A stretch of 64,000 nucleotides of DNA, taken from contig OZ249436.1 in NCBI GenBank assembly GCA_965235115.1, positions 11,408,001 through 11,472,000 of the forward strand, read 5' to 3'. Of the stretch, positions 21,001-57,000 are shown piece after piece. How positions within the stretch are numbered: position 1 is the stretch's first letter; every line of letters begins with the position of its first letter. The stretch is from Laetmonice hystrix (lineage: Eukaryota). Position numbers and translations under genes: made by a program. The notes under the pieces are model-generated. The model worked only from the letters and a program-made list of their open reading frames with translations. It searched no databases and was not told the origin of the DNA.

Positions 21001-24000
21001 AGTTTGTATTCGATTGGATCCTATAGATAAAATCAGTTACAGGACAACTAAGTAACATGTTGATGTTGATATATCCTAATTCACTAACCGTAATCATCTG
21101 GTTACGAGACGTTATGAAACACTTGAAACCGTAGAAAGACGAATTGTACCTTATCGGCGTCGGTAGCGCTGACTTTGATAACGTTAGCGCCGAGTGCCAG
21201 TTTCTCGTCCACAGTGGCTTCATACCTAGCCTCCGGGAAGGCTGGGGCGTTAGGATTGCGCTCTACCTTGATGGACACGGTTCCAGTAGCTTGGTTGTCC
21301 GGATAGATAGTGTCAAAGGCAATCACTTTGAGCTGAAAGTCGACAAATATTACATGTAGTACACACGATGTACAGACAGAACCCGTCGTTCTGCCACATT
21401 TCGTGATTTCATTATTATTTTATTCTAAGTAATACTGGCGGTCGCTCCTAGGGCCGTTTCTCAGTGTGTCTAGAAGAACCCCGTTAAAACCTGACTATCT
21501 CACAGACAACCTGCTTAGCCCCCCGCCGCCGTAGACCCGTAGCGGGTCTGTTGTAATGCGGTGGATCCCTCATATACTCACCACGTAAGTAGCTGAGCGC
21601 AGACTGTCTGTCTTCAAGTCTTTGCGTACACGTATCTCACCGCTGTCTTTGTTCACCCGGAAAAAGTCCTGCGCTGGGTACTCTCCAATCAGACTGTACT
21701 CGATGTTTCCCTACATCAATATCATAACCATAGTCAGAATACATTATCTATCAAAACTGCCTATTATACAAAATATCATACATTGCATCCTTATATCGTG
21801 ACCATTCTTCACATCAATGTACATCATCTTGAGAGGTATATGTTCGTACATGTGTATACAGTAGCGTACCTTCTTATCCTGGTCTGTTGCCTTGACAGCC
21901 CGAGGTTTCGGGGCCACCAATGAGTTGACAGCCACGTCTTCCTTGATCTCAGCCCTGAAAGTAGATGTCTCAAAGCGAGGCTTCTGCTTGTCTCGCTGGA
22001 TCCTTATGTTCACCTTCGAGTCTGCCGTCTTCTCTGGATCACGTTGGTCGCGAACCCGCAGTTGTATCTGGTTTCACAAACATAACGTTTACCACATTGA
22101 CTGTTACATCGCGTACACTGAGGTCGCGAACCAGCAGTTGTATCTGGTTTCACAAACATTACGTTTACCACATTGACTGTTACATCGCGTACACTGAGGT
22201 CGCGAACCCGCAGTTGTATCTGGTTTCACAAACATTACGTTTACCACATTGACTGTTACATCGCGTACACTGAGGTCGCGAACCAGCAGTTGTATCTGGT
22301 TTCACAAACATTACGTTTACCACATTGACTGTTACATCGCGTACACTGAGGTCGGGAACCCGCAGTTGTATCTGGTTTCACAAACATTACATTTACCACA
22401 TTGACTGTAGCATCGCGGCACACTGAGGTATTATGGACCCTCTCTTTAATGACGTTTAGACCTACCATTTACTAGCTAGAACATCCACACTGATAGCAAG
22501 TTTGTGATTTACCTCATCGTTCTCCTGTTCTCCAGGTACGAGTAGTTTTTTCAGTGTGATGAGACCCGTTATCGGGTCGATGTAGTAGTACGTCTGAGCC
22601 CGACTGGTTCCACGGATACTGTACTGCAGAGTGTCCTGTATTGTACAAAGTCGGGAGGATTTCAAAAATACGCCCTTTGCTGTTCTCTTACATCTATGAG
22701 ATGATTGGCAATGGTGCGATGAGAACGGAATGTTAAGGGTTTCTAATCCTGTAGCAATTTCCCTAATCCTGAAGTTCTCATCAACTGTTAACTGCAGGTA
22801 GATATACGTATTAATGTCTGACAGTCGTATAAATTCACTCACTCCATCGGCATCAGTGGCCCCAACACGGATGATCTCTTGACCCAGGGCCCAGCGGTCG
22901 TTGAGTGTCACGGACCATGCGGTTCGGTTCCACTTGGGTGCGTTCTCGTTCCTGGAGACGCTGGCTGTCAGAGTGGAGGTGGCTGTCTTCTCTGGTCGCC
23001 CGGAGTCGTATACCGTCACGGGTAACTGAGGGTGAACAACCAGACACAGGGAGGTGAGGTCAACTCAATCAACGCTACGTCATCAAGTAACAATACCGTC
23101 ACGGGTAACTGAGGGTGATCAACCAGACACAGGGAGGTGAGGTCAACTCAATCAATGCTACGTCATCAAGTAACAATACCGTCATGGGTAACTGAGGGTG
23201 ATCAACCAGACACAGGGAGGTGAGGTCAACTCAATCAACGCTACGTCATCAAATAACAATACCGTCACGGGTAACTGAGGGCGAACAACCAGACACAAGG
23301 AGGTGAGGTCAACTCAATCAACGCTACGTCATCAAGTAACAATACCGTCATGGGTAACTGAGGGTGATCAACCAGACACAGGGAGGTGAGGTCAACTCAA
23401 TCAACGCTACGTCATCAAATAACAATACCGTCACGGGTAACTGAAGGCGATCAACCCGACACAGGGAGGTGAGGTCAACTCAGTCAACGCTACGTCATCA
23501 AGTAACAATCTTAAGCTGTATTTCTCCTGCCCTCATTCAGTCGTGAAAGAGAGGGCAGGATTCTAGGATTTCAACCTTTTTTTTGGGGGGGGGGAGATTC
23601 TGGACGGGGATGTCCTATGGATAGCCATTTTGAACAAATATAGCTACAGTTTTTTTGCGGAGGGTGGGGGGAGATGTAACTGTTTTGTTGGGAAGTGCTC
23701 CTCTGAAAAAGCCTGCAGGAAACCCTGGAAGAACCAAGCATAAACTTGGAGGCATATAAAATATAGAAATGCATACACATAGAATAATAATTAATCTTAT
23801 GAAGAACATCGTTTTACTCTACACAGTTACACTGCAAAAAAGGCCAACCTTGCTGGCGGACTTACTCTGTACATAACAGCGGTGTCCCGGAGGAGGAGAG
23901 CCGAGTTCTTCACACGGATCTCACCATTGTCCTCTCTGATAGAGAAGATATCCGTGCCTGGAGGAGCTGGAAGGAGGCTGTACCGGAGTGATTGCTGGAA

Positions 24001-27000
24001 CACAAACACATTACCTGTCAGATATAACACACACACACCCTCCACTAACTCTACCGTATATTGTCGGATAGACTACAGCAGATCTGCCCGCACTCGGGGC
24101 AGCGTCTAGGACGTTTACAAGCAACCACAGTTACATCAAAGCAGTTACTGACTCTACAGATGTACCTCGGCTCAAATCTACGTCAACATGTTACATAATA
24201 AATAAAGTACCACCACCTATCTGACCGAAGTCAACATTCTATATACAACAGTAGGTTTGTCTATGATAACAGAGGATGACGACACAGTACTAAAGATCTA
24301 GAAGGATGCTAACTGGTGACGAATGTATAATCTACCGGTAGGCTATCCCTACTGACATGTACCAGGGAATAGATTTAGCAAACCCTCATGAAGGGGCAGG
24401 TCCCATGACTTCCCTGAAATATCTAACTTCTATTAGCTTGTTTGTTGTAAAGTTGTTTTCACAAGGGACCGGTAGGCTACACAGGTCCATGAAGGCATGA
24501 ACACTCACTACCCGCGGGAGGTAGAATGACAGAAACGGAAGGTTTTCATCACCGGGTCATGTCAGAACATCTTGCCTGGAACTGTTAATACATCCCTTCT
24601 CTTTGTATCACCTCCAAGAACTCAAACATGACGACGTTTTACCACAGCCCCTGTGGACCTCATATCACGAGCCTCAATATGCCCCGAGTGGGAGTATGCA
24701 AAACATCGCTGATGATGGCGAATGTAAATGAACGAAATATGTAAGTGATGTGACTCCTGAAAGTCTACGGAGTAAATATGTAAGCAATGTTATGTTGGAG
24801 GTAATGTGTCCTGCCCTACCGGTGCTGGGGTAGTAGGCTGAAATAGAAAGTTTACGATGAATATGGTACTATACTCCTGACGGTCGGTACATGAGGGCGC
24901 TGTGTTTCTAACAGCACAACCAAACCTCCAAGAAAATAGCTGGCCTCAATAATGTATAATAACAACCCCTGTTACACATAGCAACAGTCGCTTTATCAAC
25001 ATCCCCAGGTATGATTCTACATTCAAAGATATGTACAGGATGTACTGAATACCGACATCATGCAGTGTGCATGCAATCCACAATATTCCACTGGTAAAAC
25101 TTACAATGTAAGGCTCCTTATCCTTACACTTTGCTATAGTATTACATTCTTTACAAGTAAAACAAGCAGACAGGCTAACGCTGCAGTGAAGCATGTTAAA
25201 AAACAAATGAGATGAAAGACCACTTTATAAACTAATGCTAAAAATTGATACAAAGTGTGTGATAACGGAAAACGGCGTTTGATTTCTACAAGAAATAAAA
25301 GAAATAATTCTGAGTAGTGCATAGACTGAAACAGTTTTCACCTAAGCTAAGAGAGGAGAATGGCCACTTGGCAAACAACTGGGGAAGTGGGGATTAGCCA
25401 GCGATTACAAGCCTCGACCTTTGTTCGCCCTGTCACTTAACCTAAGCTCTTGTTGTTAACGCTGAAATACTGGCGAGGAGGTTTTCACAGTACGAAGGGA
25501 TATTTTGAGGTTTCCATTAAAAGAACAACTAAAATACCGGCATAAGTAAATGTAAAATGATCATAACTCAACTAACTGTAAGCCGACAAAATCGAATTAC
25601 CAAGTGCCAAGTGACTTTTTTCTAGCAACGCTAAAGCCATAATTACTTTTGCATTGTAAACTGGAAGTTGGGGAAGGCAAAATGGGCGTCTAGGCTGGGG
25701 TTGGGCTAGAGACAAAATCTACTGCCTTGCAAACCACAATGAGTGTAGCATTAGCAAGTTTACTTTAGCTGTACATGTTTGGCAGGGCCCCAAATGGCTG
25801 AACTGAAGACGTCTTCAATGGAAAAGTAAGCATCGAAACACCATTATCCCTTCAGAAATAAAGGTCCACATAAAGTGTTGTTGAATACTGCAGAACTCGG
25901 TTCGCGATTCCCTTTCACGAGAAAAGTTTGAAATTATAAAACGAAAAACAGCAGAAGCTAATCGAGCATTTCGGTGGGCCCAATATGTCTGGCAGCAGGG
26001 AAAAGTCGGCAGCGTAAAGCAAAAACCATTTTCCTCTACGTACTTTTGTATTGTTTCCACGCTGGAAATATTGGAAAACAGAAAGAAATGCAGATTTGTT
26101 GACAAATACAACTTCATTCATGACAAATCATCATTGAATACCTATTGTATGACTCTTCCTTGTTCTACCGAAGTTTTATACTTTTCTCATATCTACGTAC
26201 ACCAGGCTTGCAGGTACTTGCTGCATGTTTCTGGTTTTTCCCGGTAACTCCCTCAACCATCCCAACTGACTGCCTCGATACACGTATCGGGCAGTCTCAT
26301 GATTTGTCAGTAACCTCTGAAGTAGGAGTAGCCATACATAGATGTTCAGAGATGATAGATTCCACCAAGCCACGACCGATGGGCTCATTGTGTGACATTA
26401 ACAGGTTACACAGGACGATAACAAAACAACATTTCAAACATTATGGACTATGGTACAGGGAACATGGTAACATCGGTACATGTCACAGGAGATCGCAACA
26501 TTGCTGTCTCAACCTGAACGTCTCCCTCAACACTGCCCTCAACACTGCCCTCCACTCTGCCCTCAACTGGAGACAGCCATGGCGTGTGTAAATATCGTGA
26601 CTCCACCTCATGCAGGTTTACCAGTGTGTGCAGTATACGTCATGTATCATGGCTAAGTGCTGGCGGTCTACAACGACCTCTAGGCCTAAGGGCCTGGTTA
26701 ATGAAGCAATATAAAACTACTTAGTTCATACGTTTTAATCAACTGGAAGTCAGCTAGGAAAGAACCCCCTCCCCCTCCCCCACTTTCGCCAAATCATTCG
26801 ATGTAGAATATCAGTAGCATATTCAACACAATATGTCCACATCTATGTTGAACCGTTTCCTTTGTCCCCTCCAAAATGAAGCCAATATGCAGGTCTTTTC
26901 CCCACCTGTCATCTGAATATTAATGTATCCAAAGGCATAGATGGTTCAGCCACGTATCCTCAAGCAATCTAAATAGGAATTCATCTGGTTGAAGATGGCC

Positions 27001-30000
27001 ATATGTTTACTTGTATCAAAGCCTGAACCACCTTTTCTCAAGCCACACTGTACACCATTGCCATGTTTTACATACCCCTGATCCAGAGCTCTGAAACAAT
27101 TCAACCATTATACATACTTAACATACGGTCAGTAGGCTGAAACAAACACTATCCTTGCCGTGTAACTTCAGTAAGTTTTGAAACTGCACCTCAAAGGTAG
27201 CTCATCTATTTAATGAGCATTGTGAGGTCTGAAGATATGACTAAAGACTTGCTACTAGATGTGACAGAGATGACCAGTTGGTTCCTACCTTTCGGTCCTC
27301 ATCGCGGCCGATGACGGTGTACACCAAACTCCGGTTACGAGCGTTCTCAGACACCTTCTGTTCCCGTGGTAGGTTGGAGAATTTGGGCGGACGGTCCCGT
27401 TTGAACACGACCACGACGCTTGTTTCCCGAGTCTTCGGTGGGTTGGCTTGGTCACTGGCCTCTACCTTAAACTGTGGCGCCAAATAAAACAAAAACCTTA
27501 ATCAAACGTGTCGGTATGAATCTGTGGTGTGGATAGCCTGGCGTATTGTTACTGTCAGCACTGGCGATTCAAAATGTGGAAATGGCGATGAAAATTTACA
27601 TCTAGAAATAAGAATTGTGTGCGCTGCTCACCCTGTATTCTGTCTTCTGCTGATTGGGCCAGACCTTCTTCAAGGTGAGGACGCCAGTGGATGGGTTCAG
27701 GTAGAACATATCGGTATCCAGTGGTTTGGGTATGATCCGGTACACAATGACATCCTGAGATACAACAAAAACACATCATGATAAACAGCACTGCCATACG
27801 GAATAACTCCTAAAACAAGGACATCCTGGGATACAACAAAAACACATCATGATAAACAGCACTGCCACACGGAATAACTCCTAAAACAATGACATCCTGA
27901 GATACAACAAAAACACATCATGATAAACAGCACTGCCATATGGAATAACTCCTAAAACAATAACATATTCTGAGATACAACAAAAACACATAAACAGCAC
28001 TGCCATACGGAATAACTCCTAAAACAAGGACATCCTGAGATACAACAAAAACACATCATGATAAACAGCACTGCCATACGGAATAACTCCTAAAACAAGG
28101 ACATCCTGAGATACAACAAAAACACAATAAACAGCACTGCCATACGGAATAACTCCTAAAACAAGGACATCCTGAGATACAACAAAAACACAATAAACAG
28201 CACTGCCATACGGAATAACTCCTAAAACAAGGACATCCTGAGATACAACAAAAACACATCATGATAAACAGCACTGCCATACGGAATAACTCCTAAAACA
28301 AGGACATCCTGAGATACAACAAAAACACAATAAACAGCACTGCCATACGGAATAACTCCTAAAACAAGGACATCCTGAGATACAACAAAAACACATCATG
28401 ATAAACAGCACTGCCATACGGAATAACTCCTAAAACAAGGACATCCTGAGATACAACAAAAACACAATAAACAGCACTGCCATACGGAATAACTCCTAAA
28501 ACAAGGACATCCTGAGATACAACAAAAACACAATAAACAGCACTGCCATACGGAATAACTCCTAAAACAAGGACATTGTATTTTCCTCCACTCACGTGTT
28601 TGTCTTGGTCAGTGGCTGACACTTGGAGTATACTTTCACCCAGCGGGAAGTACTCTAAGATCTCCTTGCGGTATTCACCACGACTAAACTGTGGCTGGCG
28701 TTCGTTCCTCGTGACGGTGATGTTCACATAGGTTGTGGCCGTGTGGAAGCGGACACCTTGGTACGTGGCCTGAACCATGAGCTACAAGACAAAAACAATC
28801 AAATTTAATATCGCCGTGGTTCCTTGTATCACCAACATACTCCACATTTACTAGATATAGTCGTCCTACTCTTGGTTCTGTGTAATGAGAGCCGTGTTTG
28901 GGTCAGTCTGTGTGTGGCTGTGATAATCTAACATTTACCAGGTATGAGTTCGCCTTGATTGGGTCGTCCCGGAGGTCCTTCTTGATCCGTATCTCTCCAC
29001 GGTTCTCCACCACGGTGAAGTAGTCAGGAGCATTGCTTGTTCCAACAACTGAATATTGGATGTTTTTCTGGAAATCACCAAAAACATAAATATCAGCAAA
29101 CGTAACGCAATATTTCAGGGAGTTTTGTTTTTCGTAAATTCCAGGAAGGACGCCGTGTATCAGAGTAAGACCAGTCGTACCCCTGGTGAAGCCCGCACGT
29201 TGCCGATACTGGTGTTTAGTCTTCGGTTCTCAGATACCCGGATGTTGTATTTCTGGGAGGAGAACTTGAGGTCGCCCTCGTCTCGCTGAACTTTGACCTC
29301 TACCACGGCCGTGGCTGTCCGCGGCGGCACGCCCGCGTCTGTGGCCTTCACCTTCACCTATACATAACGTCAATGTCACGTGTTTGATCACTCAACCAAC
29401 CACATTCTCTCTATCATTGCCCAAACTTTAGTTCAACTCCAACTGAGTGCTGTGCGTTTTATGCATGTCATACAACATCAATGTGGACAAAAGATCAGAG
29501 GATATCACAAGCACGGTGTGAAGTAACATACCCTGTAGTCCCTCTTTCCTGTATCCCGCACCGACTTGAGGAGGGTGATGTCTCCATCCGTTGGGTGGAT
29601 GTAGAAGAACTGTGCGGAGTCTCCTTCACCACTGATGGAGTAACTTAGGACATTGTTTGGTGCCTGTAAATATGTAAACATCCCTTGGTATAAATCCTGA
29701 ATCAATGTCCGATACGTGAATCAGTCTATGAATTTATAATAGAGCTAGAACTATTCGCCCTTAGGTGGAGGAGGCTGTGAGTGTGAGTGAGAATGATGTC
29801 TACTCACGGCAGTGTCGGCATCCGTGGCTGTGATTGAGGTAACAATGGACCCAGACGGTAAAATCTCCGGTATCTGGGCACGGACTGTAGTCTGGTTAAA
29901 CTTGGGAGAGTTGAGGTTACGATCCACCTGTACCTGGATGGTGGCGGTGGCCGTCTTGGGTGGCGTGCCACCGTCCTCGGCCAACACTCGGAGCTGTAAC

Positions 30001-33000
30001 ACCATAGAGACTCAATCAACGTTCTATCATATTACTTACATGTACATTAATAAGGGCACAGTCTATCAATACTTGGGCTGCATTTTCTCATACAGAGCAT
30101 CATCACCAAATAACCTGAGTATGTTCGCTGACTTACGATGTAAGTTGTTTCGGTGTCCTTGGGAAGGTTGACTCCCTCACGAAGTTTGATGGCTCCACTC
30201 TGCTCCAGACTGAAGAAACTCGGGGCGGAATCATCGCCGATCAACGTGTACTTAACTTTGTTAAATGGTTCCTGAGAAAAACGGGAATATTTGTAGTGAT
30301 ATCGTCACAGCATAAACAGTCATACATAATTAAAGGACACAACACAATAAAATCCACACTACAGGAAGGTACATAGCTTTTTCCCCTCGACAGAAATGGC
30401 TAAGATCATCATGACGACCGTTATATTTCTGCCTGAAGTAATGAAAGGTAAAGGTAACTGAATACATACCTTCCTGTCGCTATCACGTGTCCTGATTGAG
30501 AGCAGAGTCGATCCGACTGCCTGAGTTTGTGGGATCCGTTTTTTGTATGGTTGACCCTCAAACCGAGGAGCGTTCTTGTTACGGTCCACCGTGATGGCAA
30601 TACTGGCCTGGTTACTGCTGTTCCTCCTGTGGATGCCCGCCAGGTCCTGAGCTAAAGCACGGAACTGAAAACAACCACATAGTTGGCTTACTTACACTTC
30701 TTCCATTCCCATTTAACTACATTCTAACACAACTGTCACAAATATTTTCACATAGAAGAAAATTTTAGAAGAAAAGTCGTGTCCGACACGGTCCCTGATG
30801 ACTTACGCTGTATGACGTCCTGCCGTTAAGGTCCTCCATGACCGACTTTTTGAGTGAGATCTCTCCAGTTTCTGGGTCAATCATGAAGTACTGGATGATT
30901 CCGGACTCGCCCAGGAGAAGGTATCGAAGATCATTGTAAGGACTCTGATTTATCAAAACACAAGGGTATCAACGAGGTGGGTCTAGTATCTAAGTATCAA
31001 TATATCTGTTTCTATTTCATTTGGTGTCTGATAATTAGCATGTGAATACGATTTCGAAAATCCCAATGGGCATCCCTATTGTTGCCAGTTCACCAGGCAT
31101 TCTGTAAGGTACTAACCCGTGTGTCTCTGTCGGTGGCTCGTACCCTGACAAACGGTACCCCTAGGACCTGAGTCTCCAGGATGGCCTGTCGGTAACTGCT
31201 CGTCTCAAACCTTGGCGCGAACTGATTACGATTGACGTGAACGTGTACAATAGACATGGCCGTCTGACTCGGCGTCCCGCCATCCTTGGCAACCACGCGG
31301 ATCTATACCAACATACATATACATAGTGTAAGATCCTTGGCAACCACGCGGATCTATACCAACATACATATACATAGGGTAAGATCCTTGGCAACCACAC
31401 GGATCTATACCAACATACATATACATAGGGTAAGATCCTTGGCAACCACGCGGATCTATACCAACATACATATACACATAGGGTAAGATCAACGCGATCT
31501 TAGCGTGAGCTTCGAAATAACACAAATCATGGCTCGTTTATTACACCGGGCTGGTTCAGGTTGACCAGCCGATCAGAAGCTTTACGCTTAGAATTAAACA
31601 AGATGTCAAGTTTGGATAAACCCTGCCCCGGTCTGAATCGGATCCCATTGACAGCCTCACCTGGTAGTCGGTCTCTGTGTCTGTCTTGATGTCACGTTTA
31701 ATCTTAATCTCTCCTTTGTTTTGTTCAATGGAGAAATAAGTCGGGGCGGCATCGTCACCCACGATTTCGTACGTGATGTTCTTGTATTCAGGCTGAAAGG
31801 TTCAAGACACCAACGGTAACAGTTAAACACAAGGATACAAAATTACCAACTCAACATCACTGACTGTTATCAAAGACTTTGTTCCTCAGTGGGAGAGGGA
31901 CGAGGGAGAAGGGTAAATATATTTATTATAATGTGAATTCTATCTTCCACTACCACTCACGGGGGTGACACGCCATTACGTGTTTGTACATAATGTGTGC
32001 TCATACACACAAGAAATGTTGTTAAGGATCCCATTTATTTATGACCACTCAGCAGGTTTAAATCTGAACTCACGTCACTATCCCGATCGTCTGAACGAAC
32101 CGTGAAGACCACCGTGCCTGATTTCTGTGTTTCCGTGATGTTCTTACGGTAAGGCATACCGAGGAACCGTGGCGTCTGTAGGTTACGTACGACATTCACC
32201 ACCACACGAGCCGACGGGCCAACCTTAGGTTCGGGAAGTCCCTCGTCCATCGCTATCACCGTGATCTGGGAGAAAATGAACATATTCTTAGTCTCCTTGA
32301 GTGGAAACCAGCATCCACATATTGTACCATCACTTCAAACAGGAACTGAGTAAAAAAAACATTGTCTTTCTGTCGTTTCTGTGAGACTTACCGTGTACTG
32401 TTTGGTGTTGAGGTCGTTTCTGTGAGACTTACTGTGTACTGTTTGGTGTTGAGGTCGTTTCTGTGAGACTTACTGTGTACTGTTTGGTGTTGAGGTCGTT
32501 TCTGTGAGACTTACCGTGTACTGTTTGGTGTTGAGGTCGTTTCTGTGAGACTTACTGTGTACTGTTTGGTGTTGAGGTCGTTTCTGTGAGACTTACCGTG
32601 TACTGTTTGGTGTTGAGGTCGTTTCTGTGAGACTTACTGTGTACTGTTTGGTGTTGAGGTCGTTTCTGTGAGACTTACTGTGTACTGTTTGGTGTTGAGG
32701 TCGTTTCTGTGAGACTTACTGTGTACTGTTTGGTGTTGAGGTCGTTTCTGTGAGACTTACTGTGTACTGTTTGGTGTTGAGGTTGTTTCTGTGAGACTTA
32801 CTGTGTACTGTTTGGTGTTGAGGTTGTTTCTGTGAGACTTACCGTGTACTGTTTGGTGTTTTCTCCCACCAGGGTGCGCCTCAGGTAGAGTTCACCAGTT
32901 TTCTCGTCTATCAGGAATCGATCTCGATACTGGGAATTGGCTTCGATCTCATAGTGTACCTTGTTGTGGGGTGTCTGAAAAAGCACGATGTAGGAAGTGA

Positions 33001-36000
33001 GTACTGTATATATGCATGAATAATACTTAGAAAATGCTTCTTTCTTACCTTTTCATTTGGGTTGCATCACAACAAATGAAAAAGAATGCGTGATCCCCCA
33101 AGCGATGAAAATGTCAAAATGTATAAACCGTGCTATACGACAGAGAAAATCATGCTGGTATGTTTGGATGGTAAGCTGTTGGTGCCTCAATCATAGCCGT
33201 ACTCTTACATTGGTGATCACATCACAGGAAAACTGTCACATATGAAAGAAAATATGTACAAAAAGAGGTTGAAAATGTAGCGGGCCAGTTCCCATGACTG
33301 TACCGACGAATAAAAAGAAGCAGACACTAAAGGCACAGTCATTGAAGGGAGATTTCAAGTAAATGATATAAATATGATTTCCTTCTTAGATTTGATGAAA
33401 TGTTTCCGACCTAATAGAGGTCTCAATGCCTTGTTGTTTAGGGCGATGAATGAAATGAAATCAGCTTGAAAGTCCCCTTAATGTTCTCATGCCTTGACTC
33501 AGCAAATAAAGGATTAATATTTTCAACTATTTCAAAAGCCCCGGAATCGGAAAAATCGGGGAGTTCACTAACAAGACTTAGTGCTTTCCCCCTCACCAGA
33601 GACACTTAGGAACTTTGACTTTCAGTGTCTTATAAAATTAAACTGAACTACGATTAACTGGTGATTAAAGCTTAAAGCACAATTCAACCTGACATCAAAG
33701 TGTATCTACTCTACATCCGATAGTGCCCATTAGAATACTTAAGCATGGTATTTGTTATATCCATCCATTTCTTTGGTTTCTGACGATTAACTGAATAAAT
33801 GTTATCAATTTCATTTACAAACGCCTACTCTCCTTCTGCAAACGTCTGCAACAGATACATCAAATAAAGAGATCTTCTCCATTTCCTACCGTTACATATT
33901 GTCCAAATACTTTTAGAAGAATGTTTTCATGGTCATGACTTTCTTACTGCTAAATAATTTTCAAGAAGTTACTCTTAATTTCATGTATCTGTGGTTCTGA
34001 TGAAGCTGATTGCTGACCACTCTGATGTCGATACGAACAACCTGTTCTGTGTCTAGGATTTATTGCCGTCAACCAGTTGTCTCACACCGCAGACAGCGTT
34101 AACCCCACCCCCTCACAACACCCCCCTCAACAAGACCTGCCAAGGCGTCCATCTCAGAACCGCTCCCGGGCATCAAGTTCTGTCACCTAATACCTCACTA
34201 CAACAAAAGGCACAACTAAGGTGGTTCGACTGCCTGTCGACAAAAGCTGAAGCCTAGCAATAAAACCTAATTACCGTCTTAGTTGTGTTGCCTTTCCCCT
34301 GAAATACCAAGTTCACAGTTCGTTGTAGCTATGGCGACATGGCTACAGCTTCAACGACCTTTGGAGGAAGAAGCACCGCACACGTAATGGCTTTGGTGAT
34401 CGAGGTCTTAAATGGGCTGGCATATATACACAGATTTATGTCTGAAATCACGAATCTGATCCAAAGGGATCCTACATTTTCTCATAAGAGGATAGAAAAC
34501 AAAAACACAGCACATATATATGTGAATATCTGAATAACCACATAAATTTTTATCAAACAATAGATTTGTTAAAAGAAAACGGACACGCCAACCGTGCTGA
34601 GGTAGGCGGTGACTTTAAAACTCTCAGATAATTTTTTTTATTGGCTGGTTTTTGTTCAGTGTTTAACTTTTGCTTCTTCCTCCGAATATACAACAATCTG
34701 CTGCTATGATCTACCAGTAATGCTCGCCTGTAAAATGTTAATAATTGATCCCATTGCCTACATTGCGGGTGATGAGGCATGGGTCAATCAGGTACAGCTC
34801 AAGGGTTAAATTTGGGATGGTGTTAGTTCCTACACGATCAAACAAAACACAGCAGTAACCTAGGTTTATAGACATTTGACTCCATACTGACCCATACCAT
34901 GCAATCTGACCACATTGTTTCAGAAGAAACTCTCGAGGTTGTGTACAGTTGTTAGTTTCAGTAGAAAACATGAATGGGACCTCCCAAGTATTAAAATACT
35001 GAATTAAAATAATGACGCTTATCACTTAGCCAGGAAATGGCTTCATGCATGGTCAGGTATGATCAACCCAGAAATCCAGGAGAGAGAATCCAGCATTATT
35101 TGTCTCACCTGAGAATCGCGGTCAGTTGCAGTGACCTTGACGATTGGTGAGGTCAAGGCGTGGGTTTCCTTGATGGTCACAGTCCACTCTCCCTTAGTAA
35201 AGCGAGGCGCGTACACGTTACGCTGGACGTTAATCGTAGCGACCGAAGTCTTGGAGCATGGTGGGATACCTCCGTCAGAAACCATCACTCTCAGCTGTCA
35301 AACAAAACAACATTCAAATATATCTGATTAAACTATGCCTTTATACACATCATTATTAACTAATTATCTGAATAATGAAACTGAGTGAGATATTGGCCTA
35401 TGTTTGTACTAACTGACCTTGTACTGGATCTCGGTGTCAGCTGTGAGGTCCGTCTTGACGTAGATACGGCCCGTGTTCTCATCGATACGGAAGTACGTTG
35501 GACCTTTGTCGTCACCGAGCAGAGTGAAGTTCAGTTTACGGAATGGTGTGTTCTGAGGGTCGAAGTCTACTGCCGTGATTCTCATCACCTCCGACCTCAC
35601 TGACTTGGTCTGCACGATGGTCTTAGTGAACGGTTCCTGCTGGAACTGTGGGCAGTTCTTGTTTCGCTGGACACGGACGGTCACTGTGGCACTGTCCTGG
35701 CTGGTCAACTGGGGCGTGCCCAGATCACGGGCCTTCACAACGATCTGGTTAGGACAACGATAAACGTTGGTATGAATGCCTCATCATGTAATTAAGATAA
35801 AACTATGACTTCTAATTATACATTATAAAATGTTCACTGTAATTTCTTCTGGTTTATGTTAAATGTGATTTGGTACTTACAGTGTAAGTGGACACAGACT
35901 GTTTGTCCTCGGACAGTGGCTTCTTGATGTAAATCTCTCCAGTCATCTCGTTGATGAGGAAGAACTGTTTGGAGTTAGCCGAGCCAGAGATTTCATAGCG

Positions 36001-45000: not shown

Positions 45001-48000
45001 GTCAGGACGAAATCTGCTTATAACACTCGAATGATAGGATAAGTTCTTGCACTAAACGATGTGTTGAAAGGTGACCCACAGCCCGACCACTGGTCACGTG
45101 TGACGTAAATGTGACCCACACGAGATAGGAAGCAAAAACCAAAACCATGTGGTCTCTTTCATCTATCTCAGAATTCACCGGGGGCATATATCTTCTCAGT
45201 GTAAATAGTAAACCAAAGCTGTGCTCATGACCCAAACTTTGACGTATAATGACAGACATCGTAATCAGACAAGACATATACTTACCCCTGGAGCAGCGAC
45301 CACTTTGATGACGTCTGAGTTAACGGCCTTGTTCTCGGACACGGTGGCCCTGTACTCGGATGATGAGAACCTCAGGGTGCCACGGTCCCGGACTACTGTC
45401 ACCACTACCGTCGTCTCGTCAGTCCTCTCCGGCACGCCTTGATCGCGGGCCACAACCTTGATCTGGTAATGTCAATTAGAAAACGTGAACTTCATGAACA
45501 ACATCTAACAATTCTAGAGTTTGGGATTGTTGGAGATTCCACCAGGTGGCGCCACACTACGATCACAACCTAGGTGGAAGGTACGACCGGCAGGAGTGTT
45601 GAATTTATTGAGTAGGATTTCAATGTGTTTCCTTTTGCCATATATTTTCTATTCACCAGGGTATTGAGAAGACTAAATGAGTAGTTGCCTGACTTACCCT
45701 GTAGGCTGAGGTGGTGGTCTGGAGTACCGACTGGAGCAGAGTGATCTCTCCACTAGCCGGGTTGATGTAGAAGTACTTGGGCGACTGTCCCTCTCCAATA
45801 ATGGCATATTGAATCACATTGTTTGGTGCCTGTACCATGCAAAATGACAACACCAACTTATAAACATACACATACAAGGATCAATAAATAGAAAATGAGT
45901 TAACCGTTTACTCTGGGGCCTATATTGGAAACTCTAATTCAATATTCTCCCTATAAGTAAATAACTATAATCCAAACGATTCCAAGTGCCGACCTCTCTG
46001 TCCTTGTCCTTGGCCTCCACCTGAGCGACCCTCATACCAGGAGCTGAGTTGTCTGGGATGGACACCCGCACGTTGTCTGTCACAAACTCGGGAGCGTTCA
46101 GGTTTCGTGTCACCTTAACCTCCACCATGGCTGTGCTACTCTTGGGCGGGGTGCCACCATCTCGGGCCTCGATACGCAGCTGGAGAAAGCAGTAACAACA
46201 TCATTTAGTAAAACAAACGCCTTTGTTAGAGAAATGGATGATGATGTATCTGGCACCAGGTGCACTACGACTTATGACATACAAACTACGCCAATTAAAG
46301 AATATAAGGTGGAGCACTCACAGTGTAGTCAGTATTGGTGTCTCTGGCCAGGCCTGATTCTCTCTTCACTCTCACAGAACCAGTCTGGGTCACCTCAAAG
46401 AAGGTTGGCGCCGAGTCGTCACCAATAAGCCTGAGGACAACGTCTCGGAACGGTTTCTAGAGACAAGAGGACAAGAGAGAAACTGGAGGGGGGACTGACA
46501 CAAAGAATGGTAAGTCAAATGGTCACAGTATGCCGTCCATAGGTAACGGGGTTGAATGGTCACAGTATGCCGTCCATAGGTAACGGGGTCGAATGGCCAC
46601 AGTATGCCGTCCATAGGTAATGGGGTCGAATGGTCACAGTATGCCGTCCATAGGTTTATATATGGTTTAATTTTAGTGTATCATTTTCAAGTGGTTGTTC
46701 CATCATTCCCAGTTCCCGGCAGTGTACTCATATCGCCACCTAGCGGTATGTATTCCTCCGAACGTCGAGCCATGCCTACCATTGCATCCTTGTCCTCCAC
46801 CTTGACCCTGAGCACCTCGCTGCCACCACTGATCGTCTCCGAGATGGTTTTCTTGTAGCTGGTCGGGTCGTCAAAGACGGGAGCGTTCATGTTACGGTCC
46901 ACTTTGATGGATACTGTGGCTGTGTTCTCTGACTTCTGGGCTGGGTCACCCAGGTCGACGGCTCCTATCACAACCTACGGAAAGTAAAAATAACGTCACA
47001 TCAGTTTGATAATGTCCCTTACACTATACTGACGCTCAGTGCTCCAAATCGGCTCATCTGTACGCCAAGTATAAAATAACGTTCTACGTACGATCAGTAC
47101 AGTTGATACCTGATTAACCTGATTCACATTGAGGTATGTGACGTCTGTGACATTTATAGAATGACGGGTTCATTCATTTATGAGGTAACAAGTGAACGAA
47201 GTCAACTGTAACTTACCCTGTATGAGGTTGAGGTGTCAACTGCGAGAGACTTCTTCAGCGAGACCTCTCCACTTTGAGCATTGACCATGAAATAATCTTT
47301 AGCCTTGGTATCTCCCGTTACAACGTACTCCAACTCATTGTCCGGAGCCTGAAACCAGAACGTTATGATCAGGAATCAGGTCAAATCTTTACAATATTCA
47401 CCCACAGGATAATCATTTTTTATGCAAACATTTTGTTTTATCTCAGACAGCCCACACCAATGACATAATAATCCCTAGACGTACCCTCTTGTCGCTGTCT
47501 GAGGCCACCACCTTTGTGATAATCTCCCCAATGGGTAGGGTCTCGAGGACCTTGGCCTGGTAGACGGTTGGGTCGAAACGAGGTTTCTTCAAGTTACGGA
47601 TGACGGTAACACTGACGACGATCGTGTGTGTCCTGGGTGGGGTGCCACCATCCAGAGCAACCACTCGAATCTGATACGTTAAGTAATGGTGATTATCTTC
47701 ATACAGGAAACAATGAGACATACACTTCATTCCTCTCATAATGGGTGAGGCAGACTGCATGGAAACACCAGGTTTAGAGACCACCGTTCTTAATTGCGAA
47801 TTTACCCCGCTACTCACGCATCCAGTTTAAGAAAGTAGAGGAGGAGAGAGAGAGAGTGAGTGTATGTGTGAGACTAACCTTGTACTCTCTGGTAGCATCG
47901 TTCTCCAGATTATTGCTGACAGAGATCAGCCCGCTGTTGGCGTCAATCTTGAAGTAACTACCCGCTGCATCATCTCCGATGATCTCGTACGTGATCTTGT

Positions 48001-51000
48001 TGAATGGTGCCTACAAATGATATAATAGTACGTGTTTACGAGTTAACGCACACAGCGGTAAATGGTGCCTACAAATGATGTAATAGTGTACGTGTTTTAA
48101 GAGTTAATGCACACAGCTGTAAATGCCAAATAAAACCAGCTATTCAAAATATACAGTCAATCATGAAGACCCATCAAGCAGTATCCCGCATACCCTGGTG
48201 TCTGAGTCCCTGGCCACCACTGAGATGACTGAGGTCCCTGGTGACGCGTCCTGTTTGATGGTACGTTTGTACTCCCGGGTTGAAAACTTGGGTGAGTTCT
48301 TGTTCCTGATCACGGTCACCGTCACAATGTTCGGACCCGTTCTCTGGGGCGGCACACCCTTGTCGATAGCGTACAGGTTCAACTGAAAAAACAACCCAAA
48401 TACATGTTAATAGGGATTTCAGGGAAATGTGAAAACTTAAACAAACTCAACCAGAGTCGTCTCTTTCGGATCTTTTAGAAAGAATGACATTATAACGATA
48501 CCGGTGTTAATTCTGCTGTAAATAACAGAATTTCAAATATTGATCTCCATTGATCGGTTTATTTGGTATATTGTGTCACTTACACTGTAAGACTCAGCAG
48601 TGTCTCCGATCAAAGACCTCTTCAGGCTGATTACCCCCTTGTCGTCCACAGCGAAATGTTCATCAGTCAGCTGGTAAGTGACCTGGTTGTGAGGTGGTTT
48701 CTCGTCTGAATCCCTGGCCGACACCTTGAGTACCGACCGGCCAATGGGCTGGGTTTCTAGAATAGTCGCCTTGTAGTTGTTACTATCAAAGTTCGGAGCA
48801 CGCAGGTTCCTCAGCATGTTGATGGTGAGGATAGCGGCCGCCTCCCGAGGTGGGGTCCCACCGTCTTGTACTGCTACCCGTACCTTGTACTGAGTCTCGT
48901 CTCCAGGCGCTGACCGCAGACTGTTCCGTACTTTGATCTCTCCCGTCGAATCAATGCTGTAGAACTGAGGAGCGTTGTCATCGCCCACGATGAAGAAGGA
49001 GAGTTTGTTGAATGGTACTCTCGTGTCGGCGTCGCGACCCTCCACCTTGAAGACTCGGGAACCGATCGACGTCGACATGTTGACGGAGATGGTCGCCGGG
49101 AGATTTCCAAAACGTGGAGTTTGTTTGTTACGAACAACCACGATACTAACCTGGGCGGCCCTGGTTGATTTCTGTGGCGGTGTTCCCAGATCCGTGGCAT
49201 CCACACGGAACTGAAACAAGGCATTGTAATCTTGCTACAATGTGTACACTAAGTAGGCCTGCTCTTTTTTATAATTTGTAACAAATGAACAAATCAGATA
49301 CAGAGGTTTCTTCATTCAATGGAATACCTCATATTTTTCTCGGGTATCCTCCAACAGTGACTTGCGTAGTGAAATGTTTCCAGATACTTCATCAATCATG
49401 AAGAAACTGGCCATTGCAGTGCTTTGAAGTGAAAATCTGGTAACGTTGTGTGGGTACTGAAACGGGAAATTGGCTTGATAAACACTCTGAACCAAAATAA
49501 AGTCAAATGGCTTTATGTCAAAAAATCATAAAACTAGACAGATTTGAGGATGTACAGATGTACTAAATATGCATTCCCTTGATGAGAAGACGTGTATAAC
49601 CTACCACTCTGTCCTTGTCTCGAGCCGAGACGGTGAGGATACGCTGACCCAGGGCATGGGTCTCCAGAATGGTAGCGTCATAGGTGCTCGGGTTAAACTC
49701 GGGCCTGTTGAGGTTTCGTTGAACAGTGACGGAGACTGTGGCCGTGGAACTTGCTGGAGGAGTCCCTCCATCCTTGGCCAGAATCTTGATCTACGTACGC
49801 CAAGCGAACAGCAGGTTAATATTGAGAATATTCATACGATCTAGATACAGTATCACAGAATGATCGGTATTATCTACATGGCATCAATAATAGTATCGTA
49901 AATATTTATAGTGATTTTTATCTTTTACAACAGTTTTTGTTACAGCAGACGCACAGGAATCCACTGTACAATATTTCAGCCGGGACCATCACTTTTATGT
50001 TAAACACCAATAACAAGAATTGATATCTATGGAGAATGTCATTACTAACCGTGTAGGTTGTGGCGCTGTCTGCCTGCAGACTTGACTTCACTCGAATCTC
50101 TCCCTGACCCTCCGACACGCTGAAATATGCCGGGGCCTGGTCGTCTCCAATGATGCTGTATGTCACTCGGTTAAATGGCACCTGTACAAACCAACCAATG
50201 CTTAATTAATCCATCATTACATCCAAACAAATTCAAACTACAAAACCTATACCTTTATTACTGGGAGTGTACAATGTACAACCCATTCAGTCATCAGTCA
50301 TATTGTAAAGCTTGCCCTTTAAAAAGCCTGTCCTGTTACAATATACGAGTTAGTGGACTGACCGTGGTGTCGCGGTCAGTGGCGGTGACAGTGGTCACTC
50401 TGTTGTTGGTACCCAGGTCCTCCTTGACCGTTGCCTTGTACTGACCACCACTTGTAAACCTTGGAGCGTTCTCATTACGTCGGACCGTCACCGTCACTGT
50501 GGCGTTACTCCGTGCGGCACAGGGCTCCGGTAAACCAAGGTCAGTGGCTCCCACCAACAGCTGAGGTCGGGGAAACAAATCAAGACTTTTTATTTCTAAA
50601 TACCAAATACAAAAATAAACAAAGGAACTAGCTTAGAAAGGATGGCTGCTCACCCTGTATGTTTTGGCCTTGGTTGGTTCGTTCTGGATGGACTTTCGCT
50701 GGTAGATCGAGCCACTGATGGGATCGACTAGGAAGTATTCCTGTGCCAGAGCATCACCGTACAGGGTGTACCGCACCTGGTTAAAGGGGGTCTGCAAAAA
50801 TGGTCAAATATTGAAAAATTGTCAATCTGGTAATTACTCAAAAACACCTTTAAATCATCCAGCATTGGTCTATGGACGTATCAATGATACTGACTGTGAC
50901 ACGATGTCCGAAAATGTTTCACGGTGTGGTATCTGTTTTCTTTGATAGTAGGGAAAATGTGTAAAGATAATGCATAATAAAGATAACGGGTGACTATATT

Positions 51001-54000
51001 ACGAGTAATCTAACTTACCTGGGTGTCCCTGTCATTGGCCTGGAGTTTGCCGATGGAGGTAGCGATGTTAAGTGTCTCCATGATGGTAACCGGTAGACTG
51101 GATGCCCGCCATGTTGGACAGGCCAGGTTACGGTTAACATTAACCGTTACTGTGGTTGTACTGTCCTTGGACGGTACACCATTGTCATACGCCCGCACTC
51201 GCAGCTACAAATCAAACACAAAACTTACCAACTCATACCACAGGTTCAATAACCATCATTTTTCAAGGAAATAAAAAAACTTCCTCTCGTATTGTAAAAC
51301 AGTCGCCTTGGCAAAACATCCTTTCTTCACTTTAGACTCACCACATAAACGGTCTCCGTATCTTTGGCGATCTCTCCTGAGACAGTGACAAGTCCATCAG
51401 TGGGGTTGATCTTGAAGTAGGACGGGGCTGAGTCATCCCCTATCACTTCATACCGAATGATTTCAAACGTCTCCTACAACACAGTACAGCCTTGTCATAT
51501 TCTTCTCATCATTCAAAACTCGGCCATGAACTGTTCCAGGATAGAATCCTATACAATAAAGTTGACAATATCCCGCAATGCAAGCACATAATGATGCTGT
51601 GAGCCAACCCTCACCTTAGGGTCGTTGTCTCTGGCGACCACCTGAGCGACCCGACTGCCCAAACTCTTGTCCTTACGGATTGTCGCCTCGTATGGCGCGC
51701 CGACAAAGGTTGGAGCGTTCTTGTTACGGATAACCTTGACGTTGATGGTGGCACGGCGAGAGCTGGGTTTGGACGGGAAGCCGCCGTCATAGGCACGTAC
51801 TTCAATCTGTACTCAATGTAACAAATTGATTTCAATCAATATATGCGTTCACACATACAACCCTACGTTATTCAAGACAGATCAAGACTTGCCCGGGTAC
51901 GAGTGCCCGACTATACTCTGTACGTACCCTGTAACGTTCGGAAGAGGCGGGGTCTTGCAGCAGTGAAGTTTTTAACTTGATTTCCCCACTGTCACGGTCA
52001 ATGAGGAAGAACCGCTGGGCCTTAGCGTCACCAACGATCTCATAGAATACCTTCTTGTACGGATCCTGATCGGGGAAAAAGTTTACAACATGTCATCAAC
52101 TCGTCACACTGAGGATAGTATTACAGAACATGACCATTACACCTGAACACCTCAACGACTAACGAGAGTGTGTGTGAATCAGACCGACCCTTCTGTCCTT
52201 GTCCAGGGCCTTGACGGTGTAGATGGCCCTCTGGAAGCTCTCCGTCTCTTTGATTGTCACCTCGTCCGAGTCGGTGGGTTTGGTGAAGACGGGTACCTCG
52301 AGGTTACGGTCGACAGTGACCGTTAGTATCTCAATGGCTGTCCGTGGGGGCGAGTCACCGTCAGCAGCCTCGATCCGTATCTGGAATCATAAACCGCCGT
52401 CAGTAGGGATCGAGCACAGATCGAACTGTTACCCTCATTAAACGGGTTAACACGGTCAGCTCTGCCATAGAGAACGTATGGCGATAGAGGGCGTTAGTAG
52501 GACTGCCACATGGCTGCTGGTTGGGCTATTGACGGCCGCTGTAAATGGTTTTAGCAAACATGTGTTGCAAAATAGAGAGTAAAATTATTCCTTTGGAGCT
52601 TACATTCTTTAAGTTACTGTATGTCTCAATACTACAAGCGATGTTACGTTGATTTTTCCCGTTTTTTGTCTATACTATACCGCAGTAAGACTGCGGGCGC
52701 CACCTATCGGAAAACAACTGGCGCCTAGTTCCGTCATACTTGAGAAAGATAATGACCAGGGAAGGCGTTGTTGATCGCTCACCTTATAAATCTCATTGTC
52801 ATCCTCATTGAGACTTCTCTTCACCTTGACGGTACCACGCGCATCGATAGAGAAATAAGTGGGGGCGTTGTCGTCACCAATGATGGTGTAAGTGACCTTG
52901 TTGTAGGGAACCTGAGGGAAACACATCATGACTGCCATCAGGATCTCTGATTATAACACTACTGCTGCCATACATCTCTTCTACAATATCTGCTCTACAA
53001 TAATAAAGATACTCGTTAATAGACACTCCATTTATCTTGATTATTTGTGGACATAAAAATAAAATAGTTTGATTCAAGTTTAACTCGCAAAAACTACATG
53101 TCCTGAGTAAATCTCCTGTCTCACTATTGCCAGTATCACAGCTTGACGTCAATTAAATCGTATTTCAGACTGACGAATGATTGAAGCTGAAAGAGACACT
53201 TTCTGAAAGAAAAGATTTCAATTTCAAACCACCTCCATGTTGCCTTGGGACTGCACTGGTGATGTAGAAGGGACAGATGCCCAAGTCACAGACGGTCTCA
53301 GGCGGCGGGAACTCCCAATGTTTAAAATGAGTCCATCTGGTTGCCAAACCACGTACTCAGTAACGGAGGAAGATATTTGTAACCCCTAAACCATTGGCTT
53401 ACCAACTACAACTTCTCAGATTCAAAGACGTCTGAATGAAGTGAAGCAAAGCTAAAGCAACCGTCTGTATTAAGTAATGCACAAATAATAGAAGCATCTC
53501 CTACTCGTGGCCTGAGGAAGAACGGCGACCTGAAGTGTAATACTGAAGCATGTAGGCCTAGGCTAAAGATGAACTAAAGCGGTGAGAACTATTGGCCAGC
53601 GTTTTTGGTATTTTACCAATGTAACCTCCCGTAACTAGGGATTACGTTTCTATATCATGAAAAGTCAATAAAAATGAAGGAGATAGCGCAACTTACTAAA
53701 ACAACATGACGCGATATAAGAAGCGTTGTAAACATCACTGTAGAAATGCGTGGGTGGGTGGTTGGGTTGGTGTGACAGGCATTTTGTTTCTTGAATGTGT
53801 TTGTGTTTGTATTTGTGTGTGTGTTTGAGACTGATCACCAGTATTTCCAAGGCTATAAAACGGGGCAGTAGTAGGGGAACACTTGAATATTACCTGGACG
53901 GTCTGGGAAGAGGAGTTTCCAATGTTGACATTGGCCTGGAGAGGGTCAAAGATAATTATGGCACACGTCATCTCATTCAAAAACTCTCATACATTTACTC

Positions 54001-57000
54001 CTCTTGTAAAACAGCAGGACTTGTAACAAAGTGACGGGGAAATCAGAGGTTGCGTTAGGAACACAGCAATCCACCTTTAAAACGGTAACGTTGAAGGTGG
54101 TCAGAGAGTCCAAAACAGCTATAGGTGGCAGCAAGGCTATGTGCTGAAACGTGATGCCATCATTCCTTGAATAAGACTGGACTACTTTCTCTTGAGATTG
54201 GTAACTCTGACAGTACCCACGATATGATCCATTCAACAACAACAAACAAGAGCATCTCCCCAATATCTATCCCCACCCAACTGGTCTCATCACAAGGCGG
54301 TCACGTTAGCCACTAGGTGGCACCAGCGTCTCTCCCCCTGGCGGCAGTCCTGGCTGTAACTCCATGCCCATGTACCTCCGACACACAGAACTACTTGAAC
54401 ACTCACGTTAATGTCGGCATCCCTGGCGAGGACCTGCTTGACGACAGTACCAACGTCTACGTTCCGCTTGATTGAAGCCACGTACGGAGTCGCCTCAAAC
54501 TTGGGACTGTTGAGGTTACGAGCGACGTTTACCGTCACGCGAGCATTCTGGTTACTGGACAGACTTGGCATACCCTTGTCTCTGGCTTGGATGGTCAACT
54601 GGAAAACACCAACACAACCTCGTGAAGTTTGATAATCCTTTCATATACCTTTCCTCGAAAAAATCAAATCAATTTTGTGCCTCTATGGATTAAAATCAGA
54701 GTAATATTTTAACTAGAATACTGACACTGTATCTAGCGTTGGTGTCGCTCGCCAAATCCTTCCTGACAGATACTTCGCCTGTGTCCTCGTTAACGATGAA
54801 AAACCTCTGGGCGAGAGTGTCCGATATGAGGTAATACTGCACCACATTGTGAGGTTCCTATCCGAACACAAACAACATCATTAATTCACCAGCAGATTGA
54901 TCTGGGCTATGTAGTCATGAAAGTAGGCCTACTTATCCTTATAAAGGTGCATTTACGGGAGGTTTCCCCAAAATAATGTCGTCCTAAAGCAGAAACTGGA
55001 ACTAATTCATTATACGAAGGTGGTCCCTCTTGGACATCACCCAAAAGAACACTGGATTTTTTAGGCGACATTTGTATACATGAGTTGCCATTTTCCCCAA
55101 AAGATGAAGCGTGTCGGCTCACCTGTTGGTCGGTGTCGGTGGCAGCCACCTTGGTAATGGGAGTGCCCAGTTCCTGTGTGTACAGTATGTTAACGGTAAG
55201 ACTTGTCTGACTGAAGCGGGGAGCGTTCAGGTTACGGTTGACGGTAATCTTAACGATGGCGACGTCTGATTGGAAGGGAGTGCCGTTATCGAAGGCTTCC
55301 ACACGGATCTGATACTCCGTCTCTGTGTCCTCGCGTAGTGAAGACTTTAACTTGATGTCTCCCGTACGGTCATCGATTTGGAAGAACGTTGGCGCTGAGT
55401 CGTCGCCAATTATCCTGTAGCGTACCACTCCAAAACGCTCCTATAAAATAACACAATTAGTTTACGCTGTAGTTTTTCAGGAACTCAAAGAATAAAAAGT
55501 TCTGTTGATTTTCATTTAAACTACAATATTAATTCATCGTACATTTCTTAAAACAATAATTCAAAGGATATCAAGGAAATCACATCCTTCAGTAAGAACC
55601 TTTCAAATAGTGAATAACAAGTCGATCTAAGTTATTTTTCCATTCATCAGCGTTCAAAGCCCCAGACCCATGCCAGGGATGCTAAGGTTACCTGTGGGTC
55701 CCTGTCGTTGGCCTTGACTTGGACGATGCGGCGGCCAGTCTCCTGGTTCTGGGTGATGGATGCGGCATACACTTCCTTCTCAAACTTGGGCGGGTTGTCA
55801 TTACGAACCACTTCAATGTTTACTGTCGCGTTGTCACTCGTCCGCTGGGGCGTGCCCAGGTCCTTGGCTATGATCCGGAACTGTTAATAACATGAGACAT
55901 AAACCAATTATATAACTCAAAAGGAAACAAGAAAAAGAAAGATTTATTGATTGACTGTATGATGGGGTCACTAAACCTGCTATGTGTCTTACCCTATAAA
56001 GCTTGACCCGGTCCTCGTCATTCAGCAATGATTTCTTCACAGCGATGTCCCCCGTGTCCTCGTCCACCTCAAAGAACTCCAAAGCTTTGGTGTCTCCAGT
56101 GGCCTCGTAGAAGAATTGGTTGTTTGGTGCCTACAAAACGGCAGATTCAGATTATAAATATCGTCCAGGTCAGAGATAAAAATAGGAAAGGAAAGACATC
56201 TTGAAAACTGCGGCACATTCAGGCTGCCCAGAGTCAGTACTCTCTTTTGGCGCCAGTTTGTCTTCCAGTTTGTCTTCCAGTCAAATTCCAGATAATCCCC
56301 CTACTGGCGTCATTTTCTGCCAACCTTTTCTTTTGAAACCAAACTTCCCCCCTTTTAGATTCGCCCCTGTGAGTGATATGCAATCATTCAGAAAACTGAA
56401 GATATAGATAGGGAGACGTACCGCCCTGTCTCTGTCGCGTGCGGCCACCTTGTGGAAGTATACACCCTGTGGCTGGGTCTCCGGGATTTTCACAGTGTAA
56501 TCGGTTTGTACCCAGGTCGGGGAGAAGAAGTTTCTCAAGACTGTGACGTAAACAATGGCGGTGGCACTCCGGGGTGGGTTACCGCTGTCCTGGGCAACCA
56601 CTCGAATCTGGATCCAACAAAAGGGTTTGTCAGTAAAGACAAAAGACTTAACATTAGAGCTTGTTTCCCGTAGTCAACTTCTACAAAGCAAAGGTGTAAT
56701 TGTCCTCACTGCAATTCACATTCAAAGGAACGGGCAATAATATACAATGATTGCTTTTTCATGAAATGATATTGTTGATATCTGTGAAACACTCCCTGAG
56801 TTTAAACCTTCCCGCCAGAAGAGATTTTACCCTATAGAGTTCTGTAGTTTCTCTCTCCAGTGAAGACTTTGTCGTCAGGGTACCAGTCTCAGCGTTGATC
56901 GCAAAGAAGCTCGGAGCAGTGTCATCTCCAATGATTCCGTACGTGACGGTCTTAAAGTCCTCCTGAAAACGTCACAGCAACAAGAAAAATGATTCTTCAA

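Follow-up and report, generated by a model that had tools for sequence, protein, structure and literature searches.

How was a cadherin with more than 80 extracellular cadherin (EC) domains built, and how much of that history can still be read from its gene? The question is raised by a stretch of 64,000 nucleotides of Laetmonice hystrix (assembly GCA_965235115.1, contig OZ249436.1, positions 11,408,001 to 11,472,000), here called the window. An initial annotation of this stretch had proposed an ancient intragenic duplication of a block of about 18 domains, with exons pairing in register around two hinges. The whole window was found to be part of a single giant minus-strand cadherin gene, whose 66 EC-type units in the window (U1-U66) include two related hinge modules with a common period of 18 units. 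The history toward which we lean is an ancient tandem duplication of 18 ECs before the split from the Patella lineage, followed by later homogenization of about four hinge units.

Two Related Hinge Modules 18 Domains Apart

The exon model was based on reading frame, splice signals and hidden Markov model (HMM) continuity, and exons were joined by splice-site chaining. Each intron placed in the resulting 113-exon model is in phase 0. A repeat HMM built from the window detected 122 exon-sized pieces of two kinds in alternation: A exons of ~132 nt, which encode the middle part of an EC domain, and B exons of ~186 nt, which encode the last part of an EC domain together with the first part of the one that follows. 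Matches to Pfam Cadherin (PF00028) were obtained on the long exons with E values of 1e-7 to 1e-19. In a maximum-likelihood tree of the units, four main classes were recovered, an odd and an even class for each of types I and II, together with two special pairs, U24 + U42 (support 99/97) and U25 + U43 (94/89). Odd and even subtypes strictly alternate along the protein.

The domain order (Table 1) is the one proposed in the initial annotation, except that the second type I array has 13 units and not 14. Over exactly 36 units, U11-U46, the class pattern repeats as two adjacent copies of equal subtype order with one novel junction, where type II gives way to type I at U28/U29. The same pattern was found in Patella. 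U29, the first unit after the junction intron, is the best-conserved orthologue, with a normalized score of 0.51 and an identity of 0.50 against the Patella unit Pv11.

The two hinge modules provide the strongest internal similarity. Their core copies, A and B, are 46.7% identical over 413 aa, and the exon lengths are equal between them (132, 177, 186, 135, and 195 nt). The canonical linker DxNDNxPxF occurs only in U1, U4, and U5; most other linkers read xRNxNxPxF or xRDxxxPxF, and both canonical aspartates are absent from most of them. In both hinges, the linker between H1 and H2 is without the proline and both asparagines of the usual xRNxNxPxF...DxD form and, as judged from the motifs, appears to have none of the usual calcium-binding residues. 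The loss of the calcium motif in this linker was also seen in Patella, Haliotis, and two UniParc proteins.

All motifs listed in the initial annotation, whose exon numbers equal those of the present model plus five, were found in register at a constant offset of 18 units. Around the hinges these are APNNV..Y.I.GEG in exons 38/70 (both 132 nt), LIGDDSAP.FF in exons 36/68 (both 135 nt), and Y..IPK...D.FY in exons 41/74, with equal lengths also in exons 37/69 (both 186 nt) and 35/67 (both 195 nt). Within the type I arrays they are KL.F (exons 30/60), P.W (24/56), DGG.P.K.SSR.A (22/54), RNLE.PVF (20/52), and IKRNVD (18/50). In the 627-Mb genome, exons 38 and 39 each had one other strong match, the in-register partner (E values of 4e-9 and 8e-9), so that the strong genome-wide match of exon 39 was exon 71 only. 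An HMM of the hinge was also run against the 150 best representative proteins, and none stood out beyond its own source sequences (P0001, P0004, and P0005).

At the DNA level, similarity between the hinge copies is left only in exons 38/70 (73% over 109 nt) and in a 39-nt stretch of exons 35/67. A blastn comparison of block A with block B, the two halves of the proposed duplication, gave seven short matches in exons, of which three are in register, and none in introns, in line with what had been noticed by eye. The 4-fold sites between the hinge copies are saturated (34 of 96 identical, against a background of 0.39). The great age ascribed to the event is borne out by this saturation, by the lack of DNA similarity outside a few exons, and by the occurrence of the same 18-unit, two-hinge layout in Patella.

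In-register Similarity along the Block

Because the arrays have a strong two-unit periodicity, the comparisons at offset 18 were restricted to units of the same parity. Similarity above background was limited to U23-U27 versus U41-U45 and does not run along the whole 18-unit block. Reciprocal best matches were U23-41, U24-42, U25-43, and U26-44, and in residual tests U23-27 each ranked first with their offset-18 partners. Identity in register was low for U27-45 (0.30) and U28-46 (0.24). For U10/11-U22 versus U28/29-U40 the parity-controlled tests revealed no excess (z 0.13, p 0.44 and z 0.38, p 0.35), and B-exon and A-exon segments taken separately gave z 1.24 (p 0.11) and z -0.48. Same-class identities in and out of register were 0.436 versus 0.421 for odd units and 0.373 versus 0.374 for even units, and a diagonal scan between the two type I arrays found no favored offset.

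The five type I strings that had been described as shared idiosyncrasies are real, but statistically they behave like class-level similarity plus coincidence and do not count as evidence of register. Shared intron losses were also considered as block evidence and were rejected, with one coincidence (exon 30/exon 60) where ~0.3 would be expected by chance. A domain tree had been predicted to pair the domains as reciprocal sisters, about 18 apart throughout; it recovered three of the 18 pairs (U24-42, U25-43, and U26-44), with U23 and U41 in one small clade. The power of this tree is low, as it found only two of 13 known orthologue pairs with Patella, and it is also too weak to refute the pairing. 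The proposed duplication therefore holds for a segment that includes the hinge, with four to five of 18 pairs above chance, and a one-to-one pairing of 18 domains is not demonstrable.

The Layout in Patella and the Age of the Duplication

The closest relatives found were gastropod gene models ("protocadherin Fat 4-like" or "Fat 1-like" in Haliotis and Patella) and proteins of nemerteans, brachiopods, and bivalves, with an identity per domain of at most about 46%. An intronless HSP70 gene, used for comparison across phyla, was equally close (77-78% identity) to its counterparts in annelids, molluscs, and a brachiopod, and its best matches (82-88%) were ENA proteins without a name. The locus of Patella vulgata has the same two-exon, phase-0 EC design and the order type I, H1, H2, type II x3, type I x13, H1, H2, type II array, again with a period of 18. 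This layout was obtained after recovery of one hinge exon (locus 8901-9053) that had been missed by the RefSeq model and by the HMM.

Type I array 2 is colinear, unit by unit, with the 13-unit array of Patella (z 3.1, p 0.0007). Seven of its 13 units rank first against their positional partner, and the true diagonal alone stands out. The type II arrays of the two species are likewise colinear (z 3.7). In the type I arrays the in-register paralogy (z 0.4) is weaker than the Patella orthology (z 3.1), and the type I arrays were therefore already separate at the split from Patella. Relationships of that age are within reach of these tests, which find no in-register paralogy, and this argues strongly against a younger 18-unit duplication that arose independently in this lineage. 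Since the arrays are colinear in both lineages, the two-hinge layout was present in their common ancestor. On these comparisons the duplication appears to be older than the deep split from the Patella lineage.

As a separate observation, the Patella models XP_055954920 and XP_055954929 belong, with upstream exons that have no annotation, to one continuous giant gene. Public gene models of Patella and Haliotis split this gene into several "Fat 4-like" fragments.

Phylogeny of the Hinge Modules

A tree was calculated from the four-unit hinge module of seven taxa. Copies A and B of L. hystrix formed a clade (support 98/95), Patella A grouped with P0005 (93/91), and Patella B grouped with Haliotis (78/88). 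The order in P0005 is hinge, type II x3, type I. Approximately unbiased (AU) tests rejected three groupings: the two A copies together (p 0.0017), the two B copies together (p 0.024), and the two Patella copies together (p 0.022). H1 of copy A was also closer to the B copy of Patella (0.42) than to its A copy (0.31). Outside the core, the flanking units U22 and U46 are ordinary positional orthologues, and U27-28 are weakly so; because U22 and U46 are orthologous by position, the homogenized tract is bounded. We read these data as indicating that approximately U23-26 and U41-44 were homogenized in this lineage after the layout had arisen. The homogenization would itself be old, because the 4-fold sites are saturated. 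The strong matches on which the initial annotation was built (its exons E40-46/E72-79) probably reflect this later, lineage-specific homogenization of the hinge core and not the original event.

Proposed History and Alternatives

In the proposed history, the ancestral gene would have had N-terminal ECs, a type I array, an H1-H2 hinge whose linker was without calcium-binding motifs, and a type II array. Unequal recombination between a type II intron (after EC28) and a type I intron (before EC11) would then have produced a tandem duplication, and recombination from intron to intron would keep the frame because each EC consists of two phase-0 exons. The most parsimonious block comprises 18 ECs (13 type I, 2 hinge, and 3 type II), which would account for the present period of 18. 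The event would have preceded the split from the P. vulgata lineage. Later, and in this lineage only, U23-26 and U41-44 may have been homogenized by non-allelic gene conversion or re-copying, and similarity today would be limited to the hinge-core pairs for this reason. The simplest account is a single 18-EC event whose join lies in the intron between exons 45 and 46, because the pattern is periodic over U11-U46 and the spacing has been kept in two distant lineages. We consider this combination of ancient duplication and later homogenization somewhat better than an even bet.

Several points weigh against it. The 18-unit size is drawn solely from geometry and parsimony. Identities are equal within and between arrays and in and out of register (odd units 0.41-0.44, even units 0.37-0.39), so one 18-unit event and a smaller event followed by array growth are inseparable by these data. 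The pairing of U11-22 with U29-40 and of U27-28 with U45-46 has no sequence evidence behind it. The existence of the homogenization hangs on a long-branch tree of seven taxa, with either direction possible, and the gene model was built without RNA support. Finally, the Haliotis rubra contig QXJH01001742.1 carries a single B-like hinge after ~18-22 type I units and no type II triple. To explain this layout, a copy must have been lost secondarily or have escaped detection upstream, or the locus must be a paralogue; the contig may have lost one period.

The H. rubra array is colinear with array 2 (z ~2.5); against array 1 there is no colinearity (z 0.7). On the same contig, 527-4054 corresponds to 24216-24989 and 32010-34461, which makes copies of about four type I units with 85-90% identical DNA; there is also a local repeat of 99.6% identity, and the contig has gaps. 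The internal copies are either recent array growth or an assembly artifact. Haliotis was considered as a single-hinge outgroup and was set aside because of the recent internal copies and the gaps, and it neither proves nor disproves the 18-unit model.

The limited extent of similarity, to four or five pairs, could also be obtained if the original block was smaller, about 5-7 units (an even/odd type I pair, H1-H2, and three type II units), and array 2 then grew by two-unit duplications before the Patella split. The strong two-unit periodicity of the arrays fits such growth, and the H. rubra contig, with its highly similar internal copies, illustrates that recent gain of units is possible. About six extra events would be required, however, and the units of array 2 are no closer to each other (0.41/0.38) than to those of array 1 (0.42/0.37); array 2 has also stayed at 13 units in two very distant lineages. 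We regard this course as rather unlikely, though it deserves serious consideration. Convergence without any duplication, by contrast, would have to produce 47% identity over 413 aa, equal exon lengths, and one exon pair with 73% identical DNA. Even though the hinge features are functionally loaded, with their calcium motifs lost, this is hardly credible.

Other alternatives concern the hinge tree. Slow evolution of the hinges could have preserved the original similarity without later homogenization, the grouping of A and B then being an artifact of short and long branches. The Patella branches are indeed longer than those of L. hystrix, and hinge-type units are under position-specific constraints that are kept across species. 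However, there is only a modest difference in tip-branch length (0.8-1.0 versus 1.0-1.3), and the internal branch that joins the two own copies is long (0.45) and well supported. Both positional-orthology groupings were rejected by the AU tests, and H1 of copy A is closer to the B copy of Patella, next to an orthologous U22. We consider this explanation improbable. The closeness of the own hinge modules to each other, above that to either Patella copy, could instead mean that the 18-unit duplication occurred independently in both lineages after their split. In that case, type I paralogy should be at least as strong as orthology, contrary to what was measured, and the identical 3 + 13 layout would have arisen twice, which is itself improbable. 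Independent origin is accordingly given very little weight.

Extent of the Gene and Its Membrane Anchor

The gene extends ~26 kb beyond window position 1. About 16 more EC units lie within ~18.5 kb below that position and are followed by two divergent EC domains. An open reading frame (ORF) ~25 kb below window position 1 encodes a 23-residue hydrophobic, putative transmembrane segment and a proline-rich tail. The tandem EC repeats typical of the cadherin superfamily (66 HMM units in the window, ~18 downstream) are thus followed by a single-pass anchor, as read from the sequence, and the whole gene has a total of ~84 ECs. Ten membrane-proximal ORFs were searched and contained no EGF and no laminin-G domains, only two weak Cadherin matches, although short exons may escape such a search. 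The exon with the transmembrane segment (L004:4060-5106, minus strand) runs into a long proline-rich repeat (PPPQVR, PPRYV), which is open in all three frames.

Comparison with Known Systems

Fat and Dachsous have very long EC arrays (34 and 27 ECs) and a single transmembrane segment; some of their linkers are without calcium motifs and presumably bend the rod, and in Fat, EGF and laminin-G domains precede the membrane. The present gene resembles them in its very long EC array and single transmembrane segment. It differs in its ~84 ECs, in the alternation of subtypes, and in the membrane-proximal ORFs, where neither EGF nor laminin-G domains were found. In titin and nebulin, multi-domain blocks were tandemly duplicated within one gene, helped by symmetric exon phases. 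Those proteins consist of Ig/FN3 or nebulin modules whose super-repeats are still clear, whereas most pairs in this cadherin are saturated.

In LI-cadherin/7D-cadherin (CDH17), EC1-2 and EC3-7 resemble EC1-2 and EC1-5 of classical cadherins, and the protein has a calcium-free, flexible linker (PMC8427231). There, too, repetition of an EC block within the protein enlarged the ectodomain. The block of CDH17 is two ECs, with the calcium-free linker at the copy junction; here it is up to 18 ECs in a protein of ~84, with the atypical linker inside each copy. In protocadherin-15, the EC9-10 linker, which is without canonical calcium residues, is reported to be a bent, elastic element (PMC5120219). 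It is the single such linker of an 11-EC protein, with no duplication. The protein encoded here may be a rod with two flexible hinges ~18 ECs apart, the hinge mechanics being predicted from the motifs alone.

Repeat proteins are well known to grow by the duplication in tandem of blocks of several domains. The mechanism proposed is an ordinary one, at work in a gene that is unusually large and poorly annotated. The locus would show how a cadherin of more than 80 ECs was built and how a two-hinge, 18-EC spacing stayed stable across a very deep split. The H1-H2 linker without calcium motifs is a defined module for cadherin structural biology. As a caution on method, idiosyncrasies matched by eye in a periodic array are no evidence of register, and single-domain trees cannot settle it. 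More speculatively, and with considerable doubt, the gene might represent an undescribed lophotrochozoan family of giant cadherins, with ~84 strictly alternating ECs, two calcium-motif-less linkers that have stayed exactly 18 domains apart since a time before very distant lineages diverged, and, in this lineage, hinge modules kept alike by non-allelic gene conversion. If conversion did keep the hinges alike, they must match each other, for example in a rod that folds back or in antiparallel hinge-to-hinge pairing.

Feature Coordinates and Minor Observations

TABLE 1. Features of the cadherin gene and related loci. Positions are those of the window unless an accession is given.
Feature	Content	Position	Strand	Remarks
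Giant cadherin gene, part	113 exons, 6835 aa, 66 EC-type units U1-U66	3..61824	(-)	
N-terminal ECs	U1-5			Canonical DxNDN linkers in U1, U4, U5
Type I array 1	U6-U23, 18 units	46036..58944	(-)	Odd/even subtypes alternating
Hinge A	U24-25 (H1, H2)			
Three type II units	U26-U28, separating hinge A from array 2	41654..44646	(-)	Same triple in Patella
Type I array 2	U29-U41, 13 units	29850..41644	(-)	Unit-by-unit colinear with Patella Pv11-23
Hinge B	U42-43			
Long type II array	U44-U66 in window, continuing beyond	3..28637	(-)	RN-/RD-type linkers alternating
Block A of the initial annotation	Exons 15-45 = EC 11-28 (13 type I, 2 hinge, 3 type II)	43040..55880	(-)	
Block B of the initial annotation	Exons 46-78 = EC 29-46	22513..41803	(-)	Class pattern as block A
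Intron at type II to type I junction	Exon 45/exon 46	41804..43039	(-)	Probable join of the two copies
Hinge core copy A	U23-U26: pre-hinge unit, H1, H2, first type II unit	44057..46812	(-)	
Hinge core copy B	U41-U44	27331..30502	(-)	
H1-H2 linker, copy A	Exon 39	45286..45462	(-)	RDRGTLRF replacing DxNDNxPxF; AAPG replacing DxD
H1-H2 linker, copy B	Exon 71	29181..29357	(-)	RDEGDLKF ... ASPG
Minisatellites with repeated splice sites		37329-37608; 31282-31490; 32372-32860; 27744-28576; 23010-23509; 22046-22429; 41138-41204		
Patella vulgata locus	Same two-exon, phase-0 EC design	OW026349.2:14514983-14577560		

Six units apart in the long type II array, U47 pairs with U53 and U48 with U54 as mutual best matches (14060-21911, U47-U54), which hints at a further, smaller block duplication.

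Seven intronic minisatellites in 34 kb start within an exon and repeat the splice site itself. In one of them, a 93-bp unit is present three times, in frame, and contains the 3' half of exon 55 with its donor; in another, a 51-bp unit is present four times and contains the acceptor with 21 nt from the start of exon 65. Such minisatellites could be a source of alternative splice sites.

Elsewhere in the same genome, contig C4 carries many single-exon ORFs of ~900-1000 aa with cadherin repeats (e.g. 14306867-14307040 and 26886991-26887152), which look like a protocadherin-type gene family.

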